Sequence record: KX467643.1
DNA length: 39,399 nt
Reading direction: 5' to 3' (one strand)
The notes beneath the pieces were generated by a model. It did no database searches, was not told the origin of the DNA, and worked only from the letters and a program-made list of their open reading frames with translations. The position numbers were made by a program, and so were the translations under genes. Shown one piece after another: positions 2,350 to 20,710 of the stretch (position 1 is the first letter of the stretch; each line of letters begins with the position of its first letter).

Positions 2350-4151
2350 TTGCATAACACCTTTATCATTTTTTCTCCTATTACCTTTTTGCTTATTTCT
2401 TTTTGCGTACAAAGTTCTGTTTTATTGTGTATTCCATTTCTCATCAGTTCTATTGCCCTTTTTCTGCCTATTCCAGGCAATTGAACAAGTGCTAACGCTG
2501 ATGCTGGTACGCCATATCTAATTTCTAAGAATAATAGTCTTAGTTTGTCAGCTAGTTCCTTTTTTCCTAGTGCTTTTGTAATTCTGTATACACCGTATGA
2601 CTGCCATGATAGTGTTTGTACTAACTTATTTAGATCGTTAAGTGTCATGCTTTTTGTTGCCTTTACTATTGTTTTCTCATCAACTCCTTTTATCCATGAG
2701 TTGAATAACGTGTTAACGTTTTCGCCTTTCGATGCGTTTAATACATTTTCGTTCTCTAATATTGCGTTTACTATTTCATCTTCTTTTACATTGTTTTTTG
2801 TTAAAACATCATGGTATGCAATAGCGTCTTTGACATCGAAATATGATTCTGCAACAGCTCTTCCGTAAAGTGTAGTAAAATACCCGGTGCCATCTTGTCC
2901 TATTAATTTTGCTTCATTTAGTTTTTCTAACGTCTGTTTAATCAGTTGTTCACTTACGTTTCTAAACGATATTGTATGTTTTGTTGATTCTAATATCTTA
3001 TCAGGTTTTATATAGATATACTTTGACACTAATGCAAGGAGGAAGTCTTCGAGGACGTGGTGTCCTGTTATTGTGCCGTAATTCGTGTTGAAGTAGGTTC
3101 TTTTTAGTCTTTCCGCTTGTCTAACGTCAGTTGCTTCTATTATGCATAATCCCTCTTCGTCGTATCCAGGACGCCCAGCCCTTCCGCATATTTGGTCGAA
3201 CTCAATTGGCGTAATTTCTTTCCATCCTACGAAACGTCCATACTCTATGATCGGTAGTTTTAGGTCGTCGAATATTACAGCGTAAAATGGGAAGTTAACA
3301 CCCTGTGATAGTGCAGTAGTTGATACGATTATGTTGTATTTCCCTTGACGTGTTTCTTCCAATAACCTTAGTTTTGTCTCTGCGTCTAGTCCTGCGTGAA
3401 AGAACGCTACTTTGTTTTGAAATTTCCTATCGTATATCATGTATAATTCTTCTGCTTTCTTTCTCGTTGATGTGAAGATCATTACTACTTTGTTTTTTCT
3501 TACCATCTTCTTGATAAAGTCTTCCTTCAGCTCTATGACGTCACCGTCCTCAAAGAATAATTTGTTCCCTATTTTAATTGCCTTATAAAGTGGGATCGGT
3601 CTCTCGTCTGTTTTTATTATTTCTGCATCTGTTATTTCCGCTATCTTATCAACGTCAGGTATTGTTGCACTCATTGCCACTATTCTGATTCCTTCGTTCA
3701 TTGTGTATGCTATCAAATTCTCAATAGCTTTTCCTCTTTCCTTGTCACCTATGTTATGTATTTCGTCTATAATCATTACTTCGATTCTATCAGTCCATGG
3801 ATAATGTCTTCTAAATACAGCATCTGCTTTCTCGTAAGTAGTAAAGATTACTCTCTCTTCCAAGTTCTCTGGGTCTTCTTCATAAACTTCTGATGTTAAT
3901 GCTACACTGTCAGCATATCCGTTAACGAGTGGTGCTACTTTGTTATGAAAGTCTTCATTTAGCTGAAGTGCTAGTGCTCTTAATGGTACTGTGTACATTA
4001 CTCTGCTTTTTACTTCCATTGCCATTAACATGGCTAAAAATGACTTACCTGTGCCCGTTGGTGCTGAGATTAACAAGTTTTTATCAGTCATTAAGAATGA
4101 TTGTAATGCATTTTTTTGAAACTCATTTAGTTGTACTGTCACTTTCACCAC
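2346..4151 (-). CDS. SF2 Ski2/Hel308-like DExH helicase, about 600 aa
   Basis: [36 protein letters not shown]; C-terminal Hh[10 protein letters not shown]. Confidence 0.95.
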
Positions 4152-4362
4152 CTGTAAATTCCTGTTGTGTCATTTTCCTTATTACTGATATTTTTGATAT
4201 TTTTATGTAGATTGGGTTTCCGTTAGGGTCTGTTCCTATTATATTATTGTAGTCGTCAATTTCTTGTATTTGAAGTCTGTATTTCCTGCCTTGTGCTAGC
4301 ACTTCTATAAAATCACCTGTCGAAAACGAGTATTTTCCTATTCTAAGTTCATGTTTTGCCAT
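4123..4362 (-). CDS. 79-aa protein, possible Sm/Hfq-like fold
   Basis: TATA (TTTAAA, 4388-4393) about 26 nt upstream of ATG 4362; Sm1-like QIQEIDDYNNIIG and Sm2-like IYIKISKISVI. The fold is an inference. Confidence 0.7.
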   Translation of the reverse strand: MAKHELRIGKYSFSTGDFIEVLAQGRKYRLQIQEIDDYNNIIGTDPNGNPIYIKISKISVIRKMTQQEFTGGESDSTTK

Positions 4363-4424
4363 TACTTTGTGATAGTACAAAGTTGGATTTAAATTTTTTT
4401 AGTCCGTTTTCCTTCATTGATATT

Positions 4425-5000: not shown

Positions 5001-5567
5001 TTACCCCTTTTTCGTTTTCGTTAATGCTTCATATTGCGTCTTTAATTCTTCAAGTCTTGAAGGGTGTACTAGTGTTACCATGGGCTGTGGGTAATCCGAT
5101 TGTTGTAATGCTACACCTACAATTACGGCACCGTTTTTCAGCTTCGGTATTACACTTCTTAATAGGCTATAATAGACTCCTTGAGATGTTGAGAACAAGT
5201 ACACCTCCTTTTTATGGTTATTTACTTCCTTTATTAGGTCGATTGGTATGGTCTGATTGTTTGTGATCTCTTTGATTAGTTTTTGTTCTAATTTACTGTC
5301 GTCTATGACGTACCCGTCTATATATGACACTTGTGCTGGTTCATTACTGTTCTTTAGTATCACGTCTCTGATTTCTACTTTTTTGATTACCAGTAAATGC
5401 CATAAGTAGTTTTTCAAGTTTTCCCTTTGGAATGGTAATGTAAACTCATCACTTTTTGCTTCTTCAACTAGTTCAACTTTTTGTGTTTCTGTGTTTGCTA
5501 TTTCAACATTTTCTTCATTTACTTCTTCTTTTAACTCCTCTTTTATTTTATCTTTTGAACTTACCAT
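5001..5567 (-). CDS. 188-aa protein, candidate OB-fold SSB (phi29 gp5-like)
   Basis: GGAGGCG RBS; acidic N-terminal tail; VEIRDVI and LFSTSQGVYYSL resemble the phi29-type SSB pattern. Confidence 0.75.
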   Translation of the reverse strand: MVSSKDKIKEELKEEVNEENVEIANTETQKVELVEEAKSDEFTLPFQRENLKNYLWHLLVIKKVEIRDVILKNSNEPAQVSYIDGYVIDDSKLEQKLIKEITNNQTIPIDLIKEVNNHKKEVYLFSTSQGVYYSLLRSVIPKLKNGAVIVGVALQQSDYPQPMVTLVHPSRLEELKTQYEALTKTKKG

Positions 5568-5791
5568 TGTTTAATCGCCTCCTTTATCTCTTCAGGGTAT
5601 GAGTCATACAATTCGCAAAATTCTAAAAAAATTCTCTCACTTTGACTTAACGCCTCAAGGGGTAACCCTTGAGGATTTACTATTTTTTGACATTCATCAA
5701 ACGCGGGCATTTTTGTTCTATCATAAATTGTAGCACAATTGATATTTAAATTTTTCTGTATGCGTTGGTTGTCTTCATTAATGAGTTTCAT
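5561..5791 (-). CDS. Hypothetical protein, 76 aa
   Basis: Overlaps the next start codon; plausible composition. Confidence 0.7.
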   Translation of the reverse strand: MKLINEDNQRIQKNLNINCATIYDRTKMPAFDECQKIVNPQGLPLEALSQSERIFLEFCELYDSYPEEIKEAIKQW

Positions 5792-5848
5792 GGGAAGAAA
5801 TATTATTTGAAACTTGAAAAAAACTAATGATAAAAAAAGAGAAATGAA

Positions 5849-6013
5849 TTATGCTCCTCTTCTTTGGAGATATTCTTCTAAAGCTTCTTTAATTACGTCA
5901 TTAACTCTTCTATCATGTTCTGCACAATAGACTTTTAGACGTTTTTTTAGAGACTTAGGGATGTAAATTCCAAAAGATACCTTTTCATCTTCTTTTTCTT
6001 CTTGTTCTGTCAT
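5849..6013 (-). CDS. svtR: Ribbon-helix-helix transcription regulator, SvtR (SIRV1 ORF56b)-like, 54 aa; not in the ORF track
   Basis: Translation MTEQEEKEDEKVSFGIYIPKSLKKRLKVYCAEHDRRVNDVIKEALEEYLQRRGA; the FGIY...LK.RLKVYCA...EEYLQ+R pattern matches SvtR as recalled; GGTGA RBS and own promoter. Confidence 0.85.
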   Translation of the reverse strand: MTEQEEKEDEKVSFGIYIPKSLKKRLKVYCAEHDRRVNDVIKEALEEYLQRRGA

Positions 6014-6046
6014 TTTCTCACCTAGGTTGTATTTAGTATTAATCGA

Positions 6047-6064
6047 TATTTAAAGCTTTTTCTA
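6047..6064 (-). promoter_or_regulatory. BRE-TATA promoter of the svtR-like gene
   Basis: TAGAAAAAGCTTTAAATA on the minus strand, about 34 nt upstream of the ATG. Confidence 0.7.
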
Positions 6065-6148
6065 AAAATAAGTTTAGAAGAAAGATGGAAAGAGAAGAGA
6101 GTAAAGAAACAAATTTTTTATCGAAAAATAGAAGAGTAGAAGTTTATC

Positions 6149-6176: not shown

Positions 6177-6923
6177 ATGTTGTTAATGCACGGTTTAGAA
6201 GTAAAACAAATGAAGATACTTTATAAGTTACCTAAAGTTTTTTTGACACCCGATTTAAATAAATTTTCTATCACAAGAAACTTTGCAGATTGTTTTTATT
6301 ACGAATCACATTCCGGACTAACGAAAGAAGGTTGTGTGATATTTAATGGTGAAATCAGAAGGACACGTGGAATCTTCTATACACCAATACCGCCCGCTTT
6401 TGAAATATCTTACAGAAGGAAAATGATAAGTGATGAAGCAGATATTAAACTAATATTAGATAGGATTAGTCTTGCTGGTGCTACTCTAAATACAGCATCG
6501 TTTCTAATTAAATGGGATAATTATGGATTTAAGCTTTACGATAAGTTCATCAAAGGAGGAATGTATGAGTTTCCTTTACTGTTTAGTCAAGGACATCTAT
6601 ATGTTTACAACATCCCTAGGGTGAGGGAGGCATATAGGATTATCTATGAAAACGATAACCAAAAGGAGGAAATTGATAGTGAGATGTTTGAAGAGATTAA
6701 CGAATTTAGCGTATACAATCATGCTATCAAGTTTGATAAGAAAGTGCTGAAATTAAAAGAATTGTACGTTTCACCTGGTCAAGGAGTAGTCATATATACA
6801 CTAGATGACGTCACACTTGTTTCAGAGTCACAAGACCACGAGAAAGTCGAGAAATTTGTGTATAAGAATTCGTGGATACTGTTTTCACATCGTGCCCCAC
6901 GTAACCAAGATCAAAGAGATTAA
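6177..6923 (+). CDS. acrIIIB1: Anti-CRISPR AcrIIIB1 homologue (SIRV2 gp48 family; type III-B inhibitor)
   Basis: EVKQ..LP.VFL...LNKF.I.+NF..C.YY.S.SG.T.EGCV, YEFPL, QGHL.VYN.P, YNH...F.K.VL, S.DH and W.LFSH..PR match the AcrIIIB1 sequence as recalled; about 245 aa; true start probably 6186. Confidence 0.85.
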   Translation: MLLMHGLEVKQMKILYKLPKVFLTPDLNKFSITRNFADCFYYESHSGLTKEGCVIFNGEIRRTRGIFYTPIPPAFEISYRRKMISDEADIKLILDRISLAGATLNTASFLIKWDNYGFKLYDKFIKGGMYEFPLLFSQGHLYVYNIPRVREAYRIIYENDNQKEEIDSEMFEEINEFSVYNHAIKFDKKVLKLKELYVSPGQGVVIYTLDDVTLVSESQDHEKVEKFVYKNSWILFSHRAPRNQDQRD

Positions 6924-9126: not shown

Positions 9127-9205
9127 TTAAAGCAAAATTCTCGATATTACCAAATTGACTGTAATATTATCCAAAACTTGAGAAATATAGTGAATAAAAA
9201 TAAGT

Positions 9206-10885
9206 TTAATAGTGAATGGTGATTATTCCATTATATTCGTTTTCGATAAAATTCATTTTTTTCACCGATTGTTTTATGAACAAGTCATGGTTATAAATAA
9301 TATCCAATACGTATCCTTTTTGTTTATTTTGTGATACTCTCATTACTCTACCAATCCTTTGTATTAATTTGATTCTGCTTTTCCCCTGTGTTAATAATAC
9401 TACTAACCTTAGATTTGGAATATCTAAACCTTCATCTGCTAAAGAAGTCGATATTAATACTTGTAACTTTTCATTTTTCAAAGCTTCAATTTTTTCCATC
9501 CTTTCTTCTAGTTTTGTCTTACTTGTCACAAAGTCTGCAATAATTCCATTTTCTCTCATTATTTCGGCTAGTTTTCTAGCTACTGTTATCCTCCTTACAA
9601 TTATTAAACACGGGTATTGGTTTAATTGTTTTATTTTGTTAATGATTTGCTTGTTTGTATTTGGTGAATGCTCAAATGATCTTAACAGTGAAGAGTAATA
9701 TTTAGCAAAATTTTCAGGGTCTTTATTATCATCTAAATCTTTTATTTTCAGTTTTAGTTTTTTAGGAATTTCTGGAATATACCTTATATATTCTATAGGT
9801 ACTAAATACTTGTTTTTAACTAATTCGTTATAATCTATTGTATATGATATTTTTCCTAACAATCCTTGTATTTCTAACTCTTTTCCGTCCTCTCTTAATG
9901 GGGTGGCGGTCAATCCTAAACGTATTGAATTTGGTGAATCCAGGAGTAGTGATTTCACAATATTTGCAGGAGTATGATGGGCTTCATCTACAATTATCAG
10001 ATCAGCGTTAGCAATTAGCTCTTTCAATTTGTCATGTTCATTTCTCTTCTTTTTAGAGTAGTAATAGGAAATTGATAATGCTATAAAGTTACTTTTCTCT
10101 CCTTTTTGTAATTCATCAACTTCACCGGATACTAATGCAAATGGTAGATCTTCTCTTTTTGCAAAATTCTGAAATTGCTTTAGTAAAGTAGTGGAATTTA
10201 CGGCATATACAATTTTGGCATTAGGTTTGTTTTTTAACATTTCTAAAGCAGATAATATAGCAATTACAGATTTTCCAGAACCAGTAGGGGCTTTTATTAT
10301 TCCGTTCCCTGTTGTGTTAATATCACTAATCCACGCTTTAATACTGCTAACCTGGTAATCCCTCATTTCAAAGTTCTTTAACTGAACATTATAAAATTTG
10401 AAATTGGCAAAAGGCTGGATATTAAGTTTAGAAACGTTTTGTAATTTCCAATACAATCCTCTTAAAGTAGCAAATCCGTAATCTCTTTTCCACGCTAATA
10501 ATATTTCTTCTTCTGTATATTTCCCTTCTTTGTAATCAAATGTTTTTATTTTGTAAGTTAACAAGTTTTTGTATTTTTCTAAGTTATCGTAAATATAGAT
10601 ATAATTTCCTTTTATATATGCGTTTATAATTTCACTATCATTTTTCAAGTAGTCCATGAATGGTGAATAAATTGAATCCCCAACGTATTTGGCTAATTCC
10701 TTAACTATTTCTTTAAAATCGTCTCTCGATAGCCTTTTGACTTTGTATTCATTTATATACCATCTCTTAACACTAGGATCGAAATTAGCTATTTGTTTCA
10801 TTAAATTGGTGTAATTCAAAAAATCTTCTCTTGATAAATATTTATTTGGAGATGGTAAATATACCTTATGATTGATCTGAAACAT
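9206..10885 (-). CDS. SF2 XPB/Rad25-like helicase, 559 aa
   Basis: MRDYQ, APTGSGKS, DEAHH, GLTATP, STSLADEGLDIP, QRIGRVMR. Confidence 0.95.
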   Translation of the reverse strand: MFQINHKVYLPSPNKYLSREDFLNYTNLMKQIANFDPSVKRWYINEYKVKRLSRDDFKEIVKELAKYVGDSIYSPFMDYLKNDSEIINAYIKGNYIYIYDNLEKYKNLLTYKIKTFDYKEGKYTEEEILLAWKRDYGFATLRGLYWKLQNVSKLNIQPFANFKFYNVQLKNFEMRDYQVSSIKAWISDINTTGNGIIKAPTGSGKSVIAILSALEMLKNKPNAKIVYAVNSTTLLKQFQNFAKREDLPFALVSGEVDELQKGEKSNFIALSISYYYSKKKRNEHDKLKELIANADLIIVDEAHHTPANIVKSLLLDSPNSIRLGLTATPLREDGKELEIQGLLGKISYTIDYNELVKNKYLVPIEYIRYIPEIPKKLKLKIKDLDDNKDPENFAKYYSSLLRSFEHSPNTNKQIINKIKQLNQYPCLIIVRRITVARKLAEIMRENGIIADFVTSKTKLEERMEKIEALKNEKLQVLISTSLADEGLDIPNLRLVVLLTQGKSRIKLIQRIGRVMRVSQNKQKGYVLDIIYNHDLFIKQSVKKMNFIENEYNGIITIHY

Positions 10886-10953
10886 GTTTTGTCACTATAC
10901 TATTAACATATAAGTTTATAAATTTGTGATATCATAATTTATGTAGAGTAAAC

Positions 10954-11289
10954 ATGTCTACTCAAATCCAAATCAAAAAGTTAATTGAAAGGTGTAATTT
11001 TTTAACCACAACTATGTATGAGAAATATGACTTAAGAAGTATACTAAAACCTAACGAAAAATTCATCGTAAGACAAGGAGACCTTATAATAACAAATAAA
11101 TTAATACCAAAACCAGAATTAAGAGGATTGAGACACATATACTTAACCAATTTAACATTCAGAGGATCCCATATAATTTTACCATTCAAAAACTATACTA
11201 CAATTTTCCATAATGAACATGGTCTTGTAATAATTCCAGAGAAAATAGAAAGATTAGCATTTTACACATTTGACAATTCGGTTGATTGA
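10954..11289 (+). CDS. 111-aa RQGD...HxEH motif protein
   Basis: RQGDL, GSH and HNEHG motifs; overlaps the next ORF. Confidence 0.8.
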
Positions 11290-12301
11290 GATGGAGAACA
11301 GAGGGATAAGGATAGCTGAAAGGTATGGCTATAAGTTAGTTCCGAATTTTTTTAACTTATTTTTTATTCTAGACAATTGGAATAATATACCTATTGGGAA
11401 AACAATTGTGAGTCTTTACAATTATCGTCAAAAAGATTTTGATGAAATATTTAAGAAATATGATCAAAATATAGGGATCGCCACTATTAACTATACTACT
11501 ATTCATATTATAAAGCATAGTAACGAATTTGAGATAATTGTTTATAATGTGGATAGCATACATGATCATAAAAGTAGACATCTTCTAAGACTGTTTTTAG
11601 GGAATACGTTTATCTTCAGGAAAGGAAAAGTATATCTTCATGGTATCGTTATCGGAAATTTAATTAAATCGCATGATCTCCAGTTTAAGGTTAAGAAGAT
11701 AAACTTAATCAGGGTAAGGTCACTTTTTGACAATAATATCGTATCTTATTATCCTAAGAAAGAGCTTATAAGAAACTCAATTATTCTAGGGAAAGGGGCT
11801 AACGATAGTATATACGTAATTAATGAGATCAATAACAAGAGAGTTTTATACTATGTCAAAAGAATTAGGAAAATCCCTAGATTAAATAGGATAGCTCTGA
11901 AAAATCACAAGTTGCAATATCAATTTTTCAAAACACTATTACAAAAAGGAATATTACAGAAAGAAATATTATTTCCTATTGTACCCTTGAAGTCGTTAAG
12001 GATTTCTAAAACCACATCATGGAAATTTTCCCCATTATATGTATTTAATGGAAGACTAATAAATACTAACATTTATGCAAGAGCAATGAACCCGGTGTTA
12101 ATCGATTATGACTATGATGAGGCTAATCAAGTTCTGTTAAAGTTTGCTGATGAATTATATCATTCAGTATTGTGCGGGCTCGACTATAAAAATATGTTAT
12201 GGTGTATTGCATTGCCTCCAATAACAAAATTTTGGAAAATAAAAGATGTATATAAGTATGCTTACGATTTAGATAATGAAACGAAAGTGTTCAACTATTA
12301 G
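11270..12301 (+). CDS. Basic protein, about 340 aa, with a C-terminal DUF6745-like segment
   Basis: C-terminal [17 protein letters not shown]...YKYAYDL; paired with the RQGD protein. Start probably ATG 11291. The domain call is an inference. Confidence 0.75.
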
Positions 12302-12316
12302 CTAATAATCGAAATT

Positions 12317-12598
12317 CTATTTAAATAAACCCATTACTATCTCATATTTTGTTTTTTCCAATTTTTTCGATAATTCTTCTAATTTCTTATTTTCTTCGTC
12401 ATAAAAAATCACGTTCACGACTTTTGGAATTAAATCGTTTTTTATGTTCATATCATGAGATCTTGTAGAACTGTAGATTTTTATTTGATACTTTTTCTCT
12501 AACTCTTTCATGATACATTCCCTATACGATTTATATTCTTTACACATATTAACTAGTTTATAGAAGTATTTTTTTGATATGCGTATTGTGTAGATCAT
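12317..12598 (-). CDS. Tandem RHH-like DNA-binding protein, 93 aa
   Basis: Two strand-helix-helix units (YTIRISKKYFYKL..; VVNVIFYDEENKKLEELSKK..TKYEIV). Confidence 0.7.
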   Translation of the reverse strand: MIYTIRISKKYFYKLVNMCKEYKSYRECIMKELEKKYQIKIYSSTRSHDMNIKNDLIPKVVNVIFYDEENKKLEELSKKLEKTKYEIVMGLFK

Positions 12599-12644
12599 TT
12601 TCTTTCACATATACTTTCTCGTGATTTAATTTATATATTTATTT

Positions 12645-12660
12645 GAGAAAGATTTATATA
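12645..12660 (+). promoter_or_regulatory. Strong BRE-TATA promoter of acrIII-1
   Basis: GAGAAAGATTTATATA, 23 nt before ATG 12683. Confidence 0.75.
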
Positions 12661-12682
12661 GTTCTTTCGCATATGTTGTTGT

Positions 12683-13039
12683 ATGCTATACATTCTCAAT
12701 TCCGCAACCTTGCCCTTAAAACCAGGTAAAGAATATGTAATACACGCAAAAGAACTAACGATAGAGGAGGCAAAGGAACTATTAGAGAATGAGAGATTCA
12801 TTTCGGCAGTAGGACATGAGGCTACAGCAAAAATGTTAACAAATATTTTCGGCGTCGAGATATCAATGAATAGAATCCAGATTTTCCTAGACGACGGTGA
12901 TAAGTTACTATCAATAATCTTAAAGACAAGGCTTGAGGAAGGTAAAGTTATAAAGACTGTAGAGGAATTGGAGCAAATCGGATATAACATATGGTTGTTC
13001 GAAGTCGTCACTTACGTACATAATGCCAAATATGAGTAA
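12683..13039 (+). CDS. acrIII-1: AcrIII-1 viral ring nuclease (DUF1874), degrades cyclic tetra-adenylate
   Basis: LYILNS, ISAVGH45EAT (catalytic His motif), NR64, R83LEEGK; the diagnostic DUF1874 pattern. Confidence 0.92.
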   Translation: MLYILNSATLPLKPGKEYVIHAKELTIEEAKELLENERFISAVGHEATAKMLTNIFGVEISMNRIQIFLDDGDKLLSIILKTRLEEGKVIKTVEELEQIGYNIWLFEVVTYVHNAKYE

Positions 13040-13048
13040 AGTGGGAAA

Positions 13049-13315
13049 ATGGAGGAATTCATTGTAAAGATAGCCGAAAGCAAGGGAATATCAAATCTGA
13101 AATCATACCATTTTAGTATCATCTCGAATTATGAAAATTTTTTTAATTTTATATTACCTAAAGATGTTGTAGAAATTCTTGTAGTGTTGCCTTTTGATGA
13201 GGAAAAAACTAAAACAATTAAGCACGCGATAACTAATATTAGAGGTAAAGCGTCAATTACTATAATGTATAGCGAAAAAATAAGGGACAAAATGGTAATC
13301 GGCTGGAGAACTTAA
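13049..13315 (+). CDS. Hypothetical protein, 88 aa, co-transcribed with acrIII-1
   Basis: GTGGGA RBS; 9 nt after the acrIII-1 stop. Confidence 0.75.
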   Translation: MEEFIVKIAESKGISNLKSYHFSIISNYENFFNFILPKDVVEILVVLPFDEEKTKTIKHAITNIRGKASITIMYSEKIRDKMVIGWRT

Positions 13316-13617
13316 GCTGTAAGTAAAATTTCATTTTTTAATAATTGGTTCACGCTCATTCCTCTTCTCTTCAGCTCATTTTTGATTATTAACTCATTCT
13401 CTTTCTTCATGTGAACCTGTAACCTAACATATTCCTTATCTCCTACTTTAATCACAACGTTCTTTACGTTCCCTTTTCTGTATGATTTAGTGTCATCTTC
13501 TATCCCGAAATAGTTTAACAATAGTTGGCGTAAAACGGCGGATACACTTGTTTCTCTCTTTTCTGCTTCTTCTTTTAATCTATCGTACAACGACTTTTCA
13601 ATCGTTACTATCATCAC
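13312..13617 (-). CDS. avtR: Double-RHH transcription regulator, AvtR (AFV6)-like
   Basis: MMIVT.E...Y..LK..A.K..TSV.AV.R..L..YFGIED...; second RHH YVRLQVHMKK...ELKRRG.SVNQLLK; matches AvtR as recalled and is divergent from the next gene. Confidence 0.8.
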   Translation of the reverse strand: MMIVTIEKSLYDRLKEEAEKRETSVSAVLRQLLLNYFGIEDDTKSYRKGNVKNVVIKVGDKEYVRLQVHMKKENELIIKNELKRRGMSVNQLLKNEILLTA

Positions 13618-13702
13618 ATGTCACTAATAAAATTATTACATCACAAATTTAAAAACTTTGTATTACCCACAAGTTTAAAAATGTGATATCACAATTATAA
13701 AT

Positions 13703-13993
13703 ATGCAACTTAAAGCCACAAGTTTTAGGGCGAATGAAAAAATAATATTCTTGTTAAATTCTAACAAACTTTTTTGTGAGACTTACGACGAATTTTTAAA
13801 TAGATTGATTGATGAATGTGAAGGAGCAATAAATTACGCTAACAATGATATAACTGAAACCTTATCGATTTATTCTTTCAAACTATCTTCAGAAACGATT
13901 GGGAAACTTAGCACAATAGCAAAAAAATATAGAATTACTAGAAGTGAAGCTTTCCGCAAACTGATATTAGCAAAGGCTGAGGGGCTTTGCTAA
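13703..13993 (+). CDS. Tandem RHH-like protein, 96 aa
   Basis: TSFRANEKI..TYDEFLNRLI and YSFKLSSETIGKLSTIAKKYRITRSEAFRKLI. Confidence 0.8.
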   Translation: MQLKATSFRANEKIIFLLNSNKLFCETYDEFLNRLIDECEGAINYANNDITETLSIYSFKLSSETIGKLSTIAKKYRITRSEAFRKLILAKAEGLC

Positions 13994-14784
13994 TAGTTCA
14001 GGTTGTTAAAAAAGGGTGGTATATAGACTATAAGGTGAGTTCACTTGGCGACATCCCGGCAAAGTTCATACCCTACACAAAAACAATCGGCGAAGAAAAA
14101 TATGGTACAGACGCTATGTGTTACATTGTCTTTCCGTTACGACGAATGGAGCCATCCTTTATTCGTGGAGGGTACAATTTGCGAACCTTTGGTGAACGAG
14201 AAAGAGCAAATCAAGGAGATGGAGGAGGAATTAGAGGATATGATCCTGGACTTGTTTGGTATTCAAGTATTATCTTTGCTAGAGGACGAGGGGGTATGGT
14301 ATGGGGGTGCAGTGGGACGACGGATAGTTTGGTACCACAGGTATCCGGGCGACGGGGGGGAATATACATGGTAGACGCTAAACAGATATTGAAGCTTGAT
14401 ATTGATGTTGACGTGAATTTTTATGACCCTAACTGGTTGCTCGAGAAGAAATTACAACAACTTCACGCACTAGGGTATCAAGAAGAAGACGCGTGGTGGG
14501 AATTTTCGCCTTCTGGAAAACATATTCATATTATTATAGTTTTGAAAGACCCCGTTTCAACTAAAGAACTGCTTGATCTCCAATTTCTTCTTGGCGACGA
14601 TCACAAACGCGTTTATTTTAACTATTTAAGATATTCAGTGATGGGTGAGGACGCCGTTCATTTCAACGTGCTTTATACGTACAAAAAGTCCTTAACTTTT
14701 TCTGACAAACTTAAGGCAATTTTACGACATTGGTTTAGGTCAAAGCAATATTCGAAAAATCGCAATGATGGACAAACTACGTGA
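13987..14784 (+). CDS. 265-aa ORF whose C-terminal 138 aa (ATG 14368) is a minimal AEP primase-like domain
   Basis: LDIDVD (DxD), SPSGKHIH (SxxGxH), LLGDDHKR; TTG start with GAGGGG RBS; internal ATG 14368 preceded by a G7 run. Confidence 0.7.
   Translation: MLIVQVVKKGWYIDYKVSSLGDIPAKFIPYTKTIGEEKYGTDAMCYIVFPLRRMEPSFIRGGYNLRTFGERERANQGDGGGIRGYDPGLVWYSSIIFARGRGGMVWGCSGTTDSLVPQVSGRRGGIYMVDAKQILKLDIDVDVNFYDPNWLLEKKLQQLHALGYQEEDAWWEFSPSGKHIHIIIVLKDPVSTKELLDLQFLLGDDHKRVYFNYLRYSVMGEDAVHFNVLYTYKKSLTFSDKLKAILRHWFRSKQYSKNRNDGQTT
14102..14374 (+). CDS. Acidic 90-aa protein overlapping the 265-aa ORF in the +1 frame
   Basis: MVQTLCVTLSFRY...EQIKEMEEELEDMILDLFG reads like a natural protein; its stop overlaps the primase-domain ATG. 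Confidence 0.55.
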   Translation: MVQTLCVTLSFRYDEWSHPLFVEGTICEPLVNEKEQIKEMEEELEDMILDLFGIQVLSLLEDEGVWYGGAVGRRIVWYHRYPGDGGEYTW

Positions 14785-20575: not shown

Positions 20576-20710
20576 ATTTCCTCTTAGATAATATGTACAA
20601 ACAAACCTTTAAAATATAGGGATTCATGTTTCACTCGGATTGTTTTATCGTACATAGAATGTGATAGCACAAATTTATAAGTTTGAATGACAAAAGGATA
20701 ATGATAATAG

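Follow-up and report, generated by a model that had tools for sequence, protein, structure and literature searches.

The window analysed here is the complete linear genome of SIFV2 (Sulfolobus islandicus filamentous virus 2; 39,399 nt, KX467643.1), and within it we studied two adjacent genes, gp20 and gp21, together with the promoter region that precedes them. gp20 (10954-11289, + strand) encodes a small, mostly beta protein of 111 aa with an N-terminal helix, and gp21 (11291-12301, + strand) encodes a protein of 336 aa, predicted to have a beta-rich domain at its N-terminus (residues ~14-192), then a very basic segment of three helices (181-225) and, at its C-terminus, a meander of four strands; both carry the GenBank label 'conserved lipothrixviral protein'. 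Upstream of gp20 lies a 68-bp bidirectional promoter region (10886-10953) that is common to it and to the divergent gene gp19 (9206-10885, - strand), which encodes an XPB/Rad25-like superfamily 2 (SF2) helicase with Pfam matches to ResIII (3.3e-25) and Helicase_C (2.5e-18), a Dnd-type restriction helicase and XPB (2.2e-31) as the top NCBIfam rows and PbeA as the top PADLOC row. An earlier note on this DNA, made from the letters alone, had described the two genes as overlapping open reading frames (ORFs). The gp21 frame is open back to a TTG at 11270, and gp20 is overlapped only if that start is used. GenBank places the start at the ATG at 11291, one base past the gp20 TGA, and this choice is supported by the homologues, whose N-termini align at the same ATG, with the match to the gp21 family profile beginning at 11312. 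Because this arrangement leaves no room for a promoter between the two genes, they are probably co-transcribed in SIFV2.

The distribution of both proteins was found to be narrow. A tblastn search of 50,697 phage records recovered the two in the same eight viruses only, namely SIFV, SIFV2 and the Acidianus filamentous viruses (AFV) 3, 6, 7, 8 and 9, all of the genus Betalipothrixvirus, and AFV2 of the genus Deltalipothrixvirus. In a word-indexed search of 5.8 billion proteins gp20 had 38 relatives of 95-127 aa, all from hot-spring metagenomes except SIFV0023, and gp21 had six as a single sequence. Additionally, when 1.84 billion representatives were scanned exhaustively with HMMER, gp21 had 11 matches, all of them family members or fragments, and a 17-sequence profile gave 60 clusters, each with an E-value below 1e-72, and no relative in the twilight zone; since nothing weaker was returned, the gp21 family is sharply bounded. 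The family profiles found no homologues in Sulfolobus islandicus rod-shaped virus 2 (SIRV2, Rudiviridae), AFV1 (Ungulaviridae) or Sulfolobus filamentous virus 1 (SFV1, Alphalipothrixvirus). Both families thus appear to be restricted to beta- and deltalipothrixviruses and hot-spring metagenomes, and the statement in the earlier note that the pair is a recurrent feature of bacteria and phages was not borne out, as tblastn and the protein searches gave only lipothrixviruses and hot-spring metagenome proteins. Most genes of Sulfolobales viruses are orphans, so this lack of relatives is expected rather than surprising. The possibility that gp20 is a duplicate of part of gp21 was rejected (hhalign probability 0.19%). 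When sequencing runs were searched with the window from 9200 to 13100, two runs labelled 'mouse gut metagenome' contained 6-10% of the sampled words, besides hot-spring metagenomes; these may reflect cross-contamination or mislabelling.

The two genes are also tightly linked. In all 16 genomes and contigs that we compared, eight isolates and eight metagenomic contigs (L012, L014, L015, L017 and L020-L023), the gp20-like and gp21-like genes are immediate neighbours, so conservation of the pair, which had been proposed as a test, held in every relative examined. What varies is their orientation and the position of the helicase. AFV3, AFV6, AFV8, AFV9, L012, L020 and L023 have the gp21-like gene and, behind it, the helicase running leftward and the gp20-like gene running rightward, with the two start codons of the divergent pair ~68 bp apart. 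In SIFV and SIFV2 it is the helicase that abuts the promoter, and gp21 stands in tandem behind gp20. The pair is divergent in L014 and L017 too, where the helicase lies 2-4 kb off, and no helicase adjoins it in AFV2, L015, L021 and L022, which leaves the helicase adjacent to the pair in only about half of the 16. The SIFV arrangement cannot arise by a single inversion of the pair, and therefore gp21 alone appears to have crossed the 68-bp bidirectional promoter in SIFV and SIFV2, staying within the same regulatory unit. AFV7 and AFV8 have two gp21 paralogues, ORF334 beside the helicase and a shorter ORF303 located two genes beyond the gp20-like gene, after ORF91; in AFV8 (L004) the copies are at 3474-4385 and 5133-6137.

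The promoter region was described in the earlier note as containing an operator, and this description was confirmed. It includes, for gp20, a BRE-like (transcription factor B recognition element) AAG and the TATA box TTTATAAA (10915-10922), and an imperfect palindrome, AAATTTGTGATATCATAATTTA (10920-10941), with the core TGATATCA (10927-10934), sits between this TATA box and the gp20 ATG. The 12-base core of this operator (10925-10936) is one base off TGTGATATCACA. On the opposite strand, a putative TATA-like element would lie ~26 bp before the gp19 ATG. SIFV and SIFV2 have three differences in the 68-bp gp19/gp20 region, the region as a whole being 84% identical, and a metagenomic relative with only 50% identity in gp20 has the 22 bases of the operator stretch unchanged. 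Furthermore, the pattern (A)AAAG-YTTATAAR-TT(T/A)TG(T/A)GATATCA(C/T), composed of the BRE-like (A)AAAG, the TATA box YTTATAAR and the palindrome directly after it, was found ~15 nt before the ATG in eight of 14 gp20-like loci. AFV2, AFV3, AFV6, AFV7 and AFV8 have a variant core at the same position, and L015 and L017 carry degenerate versions of the motif. The BRE/TATA/operator design of the gp20 promoter has been kept in all lineages. Metagenome gene callers misplace some gp20-like starts (for example in L015, L017 and L020), either adding a spurious extension of the MMLYSFSGT type or truncating the gene at its start; with the conserved promoter as a guide, the true start was set at the MS(Q/L)Q... 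methionine.

A presumed binder of this operator is encoded close by. gp25 (13312-13614, - strand) is a tandem ribbon-helix-helix (RHH) regulator of AvtR type (RHH_1, 3e-07). Peixeiro et al. reportedly predicted eight AvtR sites in 2013. The published AvtR consensus is ATnnTnnTAnnACnTT, and AvtR represses its own gene, activates or represses the adjacent RHH gene and has a footprint of ~100 nt, according to a review (PMC5569661); the AvtR-regulated promoters described in betalipothrixviruses are those of AFV6 gp29/gp30 (Peixeiro et al. 2013, from the summary in that review). In SIFV2 a single intergenic site matches perfectly (ATTGTGATATCACATT, 13680-13695, - strand); it lies between gp25 and gp26, directly after a TATA-like box and 8 bp before the gp26 ATG, and serves as our reference copy of the operator. 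The core of the gp20 operator agrees with that of this site at 11 of 12 bases. Among the gp20-like promoters, the consensus is matched perfectly in L012 and L020, with one mismatch in AFV2, AFV3, AFV6, AFV7, AFV8, AFV9 and L023, and with two flank mismatches and an intact core in SIFV, SIFV2, L014, L021 and L022, so by consensus match the gp20 promoter fits the AvtR regulon. In AFV9 and in AFV6, the virus in which AvtR was studied, the motif stands beside a TATA box both in the AvtR/RHH intergenic region and in the gp20-like promoter. The degenerate 16-mer consensus is not rare in SIFV2 (55 matches at no more than one mismatch, with 43 expected), and our argument therefore rests on the common core, its fixed position and its conservation across lineages. 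In the whole window the 12-mer TGTGATATCACA occurs with at most one mismatch only at 13682, 10925 and 20660, all of them intergenic and in promoter regions, that of AvtR itself among them. All these features suggest that AvtR (gp25) would bind the gp20 operator, and with this conserved operator the AvtR regulon of SIFV2 could be tested in a concrete and inexpensive way. The copy at 20660-20671 (one mismatch), between gp39 and gp40, stands beside a TATA box that faces gp39, 85 nt from its annotated start, and another copy with two mismatches (4368-4379) is found between gp07 and gp08, immediately ahead of the gp07 ATG; these may mark a further part of the AvtR regulon or, at gp39, a mis-set start.

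At the protein level, the motifs that had been pointed out by eye are all present. RQGDL, GSH and HNEHG are gp20 residues 40-44, 71-73 and 86-90, and the quoted C-terminal stretch of the large ORF was found at the end of gp21, which holds CGLDY, LWCIALPP and VYKYAY. The large protein is indeed highly basic: its pI of 9.76 ranks fifth among 69 SIFV2 proteins (median 6.6) and is the highest among those of more than 150 aa, with a pI of 11.2 for residues 181-225. gp20 (pI 9.48) ranks eighth, and both stand near the known DNA binders gp25, gp04 and gp19. No membrane-like or transmembrane segment was detected in either, and the two are, as judged from composition, soluble basic proteins. An alignment of 37 gp20 sequences showed invariant positions that include R40, Q41, G42, D43, N48, H73, H86, E88, H89, G90, P95, Y104 and the final residue, D111; N87, within the HNEHG motif, is P in some further members. 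The invariant set of gp21 in 64 sequences is K219, D272, D276, N279, Q280, K284, C295, G296, D298, W304 and C305.

AlphaFold2 models of both proteins were built with alignments. The gp20 model (predicted local distance difference test (pLDDT) 84.6, predicted template modelling score (pTM) 0.79) consists of the N-terminal helix and eight strands, with RQGD at the tip of one hairpin and H-x-E-H-G at that of another. In the gp21 model (pLDDT 80.3, pTM 0.63), three basic helices at 185-218 are followed by a poorly modelled loop (228-243) and then by the four-strand meander and a helix; D272 and D276 share a strand, and the three strands that follow carry K284, D298 and the two Cys. Invariant clusters of this kind would be compatible with metal or ligand binding, or with close contact at an interface. 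Searches for known families were negative: Pfam gave nothing at E 0.01 for gp20, gp21, 37 gp20-family or 13 gp21-family members, NCBIfam and PADLOC were blank for both, and PHROGs gave no function label. The likeness of the large protein to DUF6745, which had been claimed, did not hold up, given that hmmscan found no match for gp21 (E ≤ 1) or for 13 members of its family (E ≤ 0.5) and that DUF6745 never appeared among the matches of the 37 gp20- and 13 gp21-family members. In the Protein Data Bank (PDB), single-sequence searches were blank for both, and profile searches gave only sub-threshold rows, namely the C-terminal domain of T4 MotA (E 0.14) for gp20 and a TRPC4 ankyrin-like match (E 0.24) for gp21 192-228. 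The identification of gp20 with the DNA-binding MotA domain was discarded, with profile E-values of 0.14-0.5 and MotA absent from every fold-search list. The ankyrin likeness (NRIALKN.K.QY.FFK.LL.KGIL, residues 196-232, window 11876-11986), which resembles a single repeat, is probably only a helix-turn-helix-like motif. Foldseek searches of the PDB with the full-length models had best E-values of 0.12 for gp20 and 0.064 for gp21 and no fold match, gp21 found only itself in BFVD, gp20 reached a template modelling score of no more than 0.45 by shape in the ESM Atlas, and VIA-align was blank. Both models may therefore represent new folds.

We considered several enzyme classes by eye, namely a cupin or 2-His-1-carboxylate oxygenase, HNH/beta-beta-alpha-Me nuclease, HIT, metallophosphoesterase, PD-(D/E)xK, Pol-beta nucleotidyltransferase, archaeo-eukaryotic primase (AEP) and double-psi beta-barrel DxDxD, and discarded them all, as the motif spacing was wrong or fold support was missing. 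One lead was followed further. A language-model feature search with gp21 181-336 gave YrbL, Kdo/WaaP, APH and RIO1 clusters at 0.88-0.90, and DYDYDxxNQ followed by CGLDY recalls, by eye, a catalytic loop and a DFG-like Asp, on which reading gp21 would end in a phosphotransferase of protein-kinase-like type, though a very divergent one. However, feature scores of 0.9 were reached by 4-10 of 100 shuffled proteins, some members have N or Y at the would-be catalytic base D274, five residues before N279 (Asp 272 and 276 are the invariant ones), and no invariant Lys/Glu pair of an N-lobe is present. No kinase appeared in the fold-match lists, though kinases abound in the PDB, no family member had a Pfam kinase match, and the RIO1 hidden Markov model found nothing in four lipothrixvirus records. 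We therefore rejected this lead, considering it very improbable, because the position of the catalytic Asp is not conserved and neither fold nor profile matches a kinase. The fold searches bear also on a role in virion assembly or as minor structural or terminal components of the filament, since the weak best fold rows of the beta-rich N-terminal domain of gp21 were beta-sheet and barrel proteins and phage tail or neck parts; in addition, viral core genes without a known function are often structural, and AFV7 and AFV8 keep two gp21 paralogues. Against such a role, the pair lies in a block of regulators and DNA metabolism, outside the capsid and terminal-structure blocks, its invariant residues form charged and polar clusters unlike those a scaffold needs, and neither protein is annotated as structural, as several SIFV2 proteins are. 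A structural role consequently seems to us improbable.

The physical association of the two proteins was addressed by complex prediction, as the earlier note had proposed. For gp21 with gp20, the interface score (interaction prediction score from aligned errors, ipSAE) was 0.53, 0.61 and 0.59 (median 0.59), against 0.26 for the best control, which is a weak pass. At least 84% of contacts were common to the runs, with a partner pLDDT of 74 or more. Of 80 solved complexes, 58 attained the pass mark used, as did two of 110 mismatched pairs, and scores of 0.60 or less came from only seven of the 80 solved complexes together with both passing mismatches. The prediction modestly raises the odds of a complex, and the two proteins probably form a heteromer. 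This result has to be weighed together with the linkage, since gp20 and gp21 could instead be core genes with unrelated functions that form no complex and are neighbours merely through genome collinearity. The block of gp20-like, gp22-like, AcrIII-1, AvtR, RHH and gp27-like genes keeps the same order in all contigs, gp20 evolves much more slowly than gp21 (40-50% and ~30% identity across genera, respectively) and the complex score amounts to weak support, all of which fit simple synteny. Nevertheless, gp21 stayed beside gp20 through a translocation and inversion in the SIFV lineage while its other neighbours changed, the two families have the same phyletic range, and the controls of the complex test scored only 0.00-0.26. 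We regard mere synteny as unlikely, though it deserves to be taken seriously.

The surroundings of the pair are relevant to its possible participation in anti-defence, which the earlier note had suggested. Rightward of gp21 follow gp22, gp23, gp24, gp25 (AvtR) and the RHH-like gp26; gp23 and gp24 occupy 12683-13315 of the window, the former a STIV_B116-like/DUF1874 protein (Pfam 7.8e-35) of the AcrIII-1 ring-nuclease family, two genes from the pair, and the latter a DUF4898 protein (1.9e-29). Contigs L020-L023 likewise have the STIV_B116-like gene at a distance of two genes from their gp20-like gene. Farther on, gp27 (window 13987-14784) has DIDVD ... SPSGKHIH ... DD motifs that by eye are reminiscent of archaeo-eukaryotic primase, with no Pfam or NCBIfam match. 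In SIFV2, anti-defence genes were predicted from an early-promoter motif (gp09, gp10 and gp14-gp17), gp15 was shown to inhibit type I-A CRISPR, and a single acrIIIB1 homologue was reported (PMC11065993, 2024). Neither gp20 nor gp21 is among the early-motif genes, and the gp20 promoter carries the AvtR-type palindrome. The echo of AcrIIIB1 that had been noticed in the C-terminal strands was not substantiated either, as the gp20 family aligned to SIRV2 ORF249 with an hhalign probability of 0.25%, and tblastn with ORF249 matched SIFV2 gp13 (window 6177-6923; 41% identity, 2e-48) and not gp20. From the gene order between gp45-47 and P98/gp49, we infer that ORF249 is SIRV2 gp48 (AcrIIIB1). The assignment of gp13 as the ORF249 homologue agrees with the single acrIIIB1 homologue of PMC11065993.

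An anti-defence or host-takeover function, for instance the destruction of a host signalling nucleotide or the blocking of a defence protein, would nonetheless suit a pair that is found in viruses only, a partner as small as gp20, and the invariant His, Glu and Asp of gp20, which would fit a phosphodiesterase; the gp23 ring-nuclease homologue two genes away is itself widely conserved. On the other side stand the absence of the pair from the early-promoter predictions made on this same genome, the different, AvtR type of promoter, the membership of the pair in the core set present in all beta- and deltalipothrixviruses rather than in the variable gene set, and the lack of any PADLOC, AcrIIIB1 or ring-nuclease likeness. 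We keep anti-defence as a minority alternative, and a rather unlikely one, since gp23, a conserved ring nuclease, is an example of a core gene with an anti-defence role.

Considering these data together, we tentatively propose, with low confidence, that gp20 and gp21 form an AvtR-gated, co-regulated two-protein unit, most likely a complex, which is metal-dependent and acts on viral DNA; the biochemical activity itself is a guess. Transcription of the pair would be gated by AvtR (gp25), which through the common 68-bp region may also gate the XPB-like helicase gp19. The two products would bind each other, and the invariant residues H73, H86, E88, H89, D43 and D111 of gp20 and D272, D276, D298, K219, K284, N279 and Q280 of gp21 would be part of one or two metal-dependent active or ligand sites, while the very basic helical segment of gp21 would hold nucleic acid. 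It is from this proposed binding, these sites and this segment that an action of the complex on viral DNA would follow, whether in its replication, its repair or the processing of its ends, and often alongside the helicase. Several observations weigh against this proposal. The complex score falls within the band where passes are often wrong, and adjacency alone is weak evidence of a common function because the genomes are broadly collinear. The link to the helicase is loose: it is not next to the pair in AFV2, L014, L015, L017, L021 and L022, AFV2 was absent among the tblastn matches listed for gp19, and SFV1 has a distant helicase without the gp20-gp21 pair. Furthermore, no homology or fold link to an enzyme or DNA-binding family was obtained for either protein in Pfam, NCBIfam, PADLOC, the PDB, Foldseek, VIA-align, BFVD or the ESM Atlas, and the sequencing-run search found no RNA run with the region. 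Of the uncharacterised enzyme and partner system that the earlier note had envisaged, what stands is the linkage in every genome, the conserved operator promoter, the invariant clusters and the weak pass of the complex; DUF6745, AcrIIIB1 and the bacterial and phage relatives do not.

To our knowledge, no polymerase or initiator, and no replication protein for copying and processing the linear genome, has been recognised in lipothrixviruses. The gp20-gp21 pair is a candidate for part of this missing replication machinery because its two tightly linked core genes encode proteins with invariant residues of catalytic appearance, possibly of new folds, and because it has a regulator-controlled promoter region in common with an XPB-like helicase. 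Both families had been catalogued before, under the label 'conserved lipothrixviral protein' and in PHROGs without an assigned function; what is new here is the gene adjacency, the conserved AvtR-like promoter, the blanks of the fold searches and the weak support for a gp20-gp21 complex.

Lastly, we compared the pair with known systems. Pfam DUF6745 has no feature that we found in common with gp20 or gp21, and neither protein is a member by its gathering score. gp20 and gp21 are full-length members of PHROG 10821 (1.6e-49, residues 1-111) and PHROG 9954 (6.3e-132, residues 1-336), respectively, both of unknown function, which record only the prior cataloguing of the proteins. With AcrIIIB1 (SIRV2 gp48) they share being proteins of Sulfolobus filamentous or rod-shaped viruses without a known fold, and they differ in the negligible profile similarity given above for the gp20 family and in the lack of an early anti-defence promoter before gp20. 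In this regard, the archaeal XPB-Bax1 pair offers a likeness in gene context only: in several AFV-type genomes an XPB/Rad25-like helicase lies in one operon beside a ~340 aa protein. However, gp21 resembles neither Bax1 nor any nuclease in sequence or fold, so its identification as a Bax1-type partner nuclease of XPB was rejected, and AFV2 and several contigs keep gp20-gp21 without an adjacent helicase. A more daring version of our proposal, which we consider rather unlikely, is that gp20 and gp21 are the subunits of a metal-dependent enzyme with two unseen folds, for example a nuclease or phosphoesterase that would serve the XPB-like helicase as Bax1 serves XPB, switched by AvtR and required for lipothrixvirus replication or end processing. 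Finally, compared with the AvtR-regulated promoters, the SIFV-type copy in front of gp20 differs by its two flank mismatches and is here a candidate site proposed from sequence, and it resembles them in that the TATA box is followed directly by an inverted repeat, imperfect but in agreement with the AvtR consensus.

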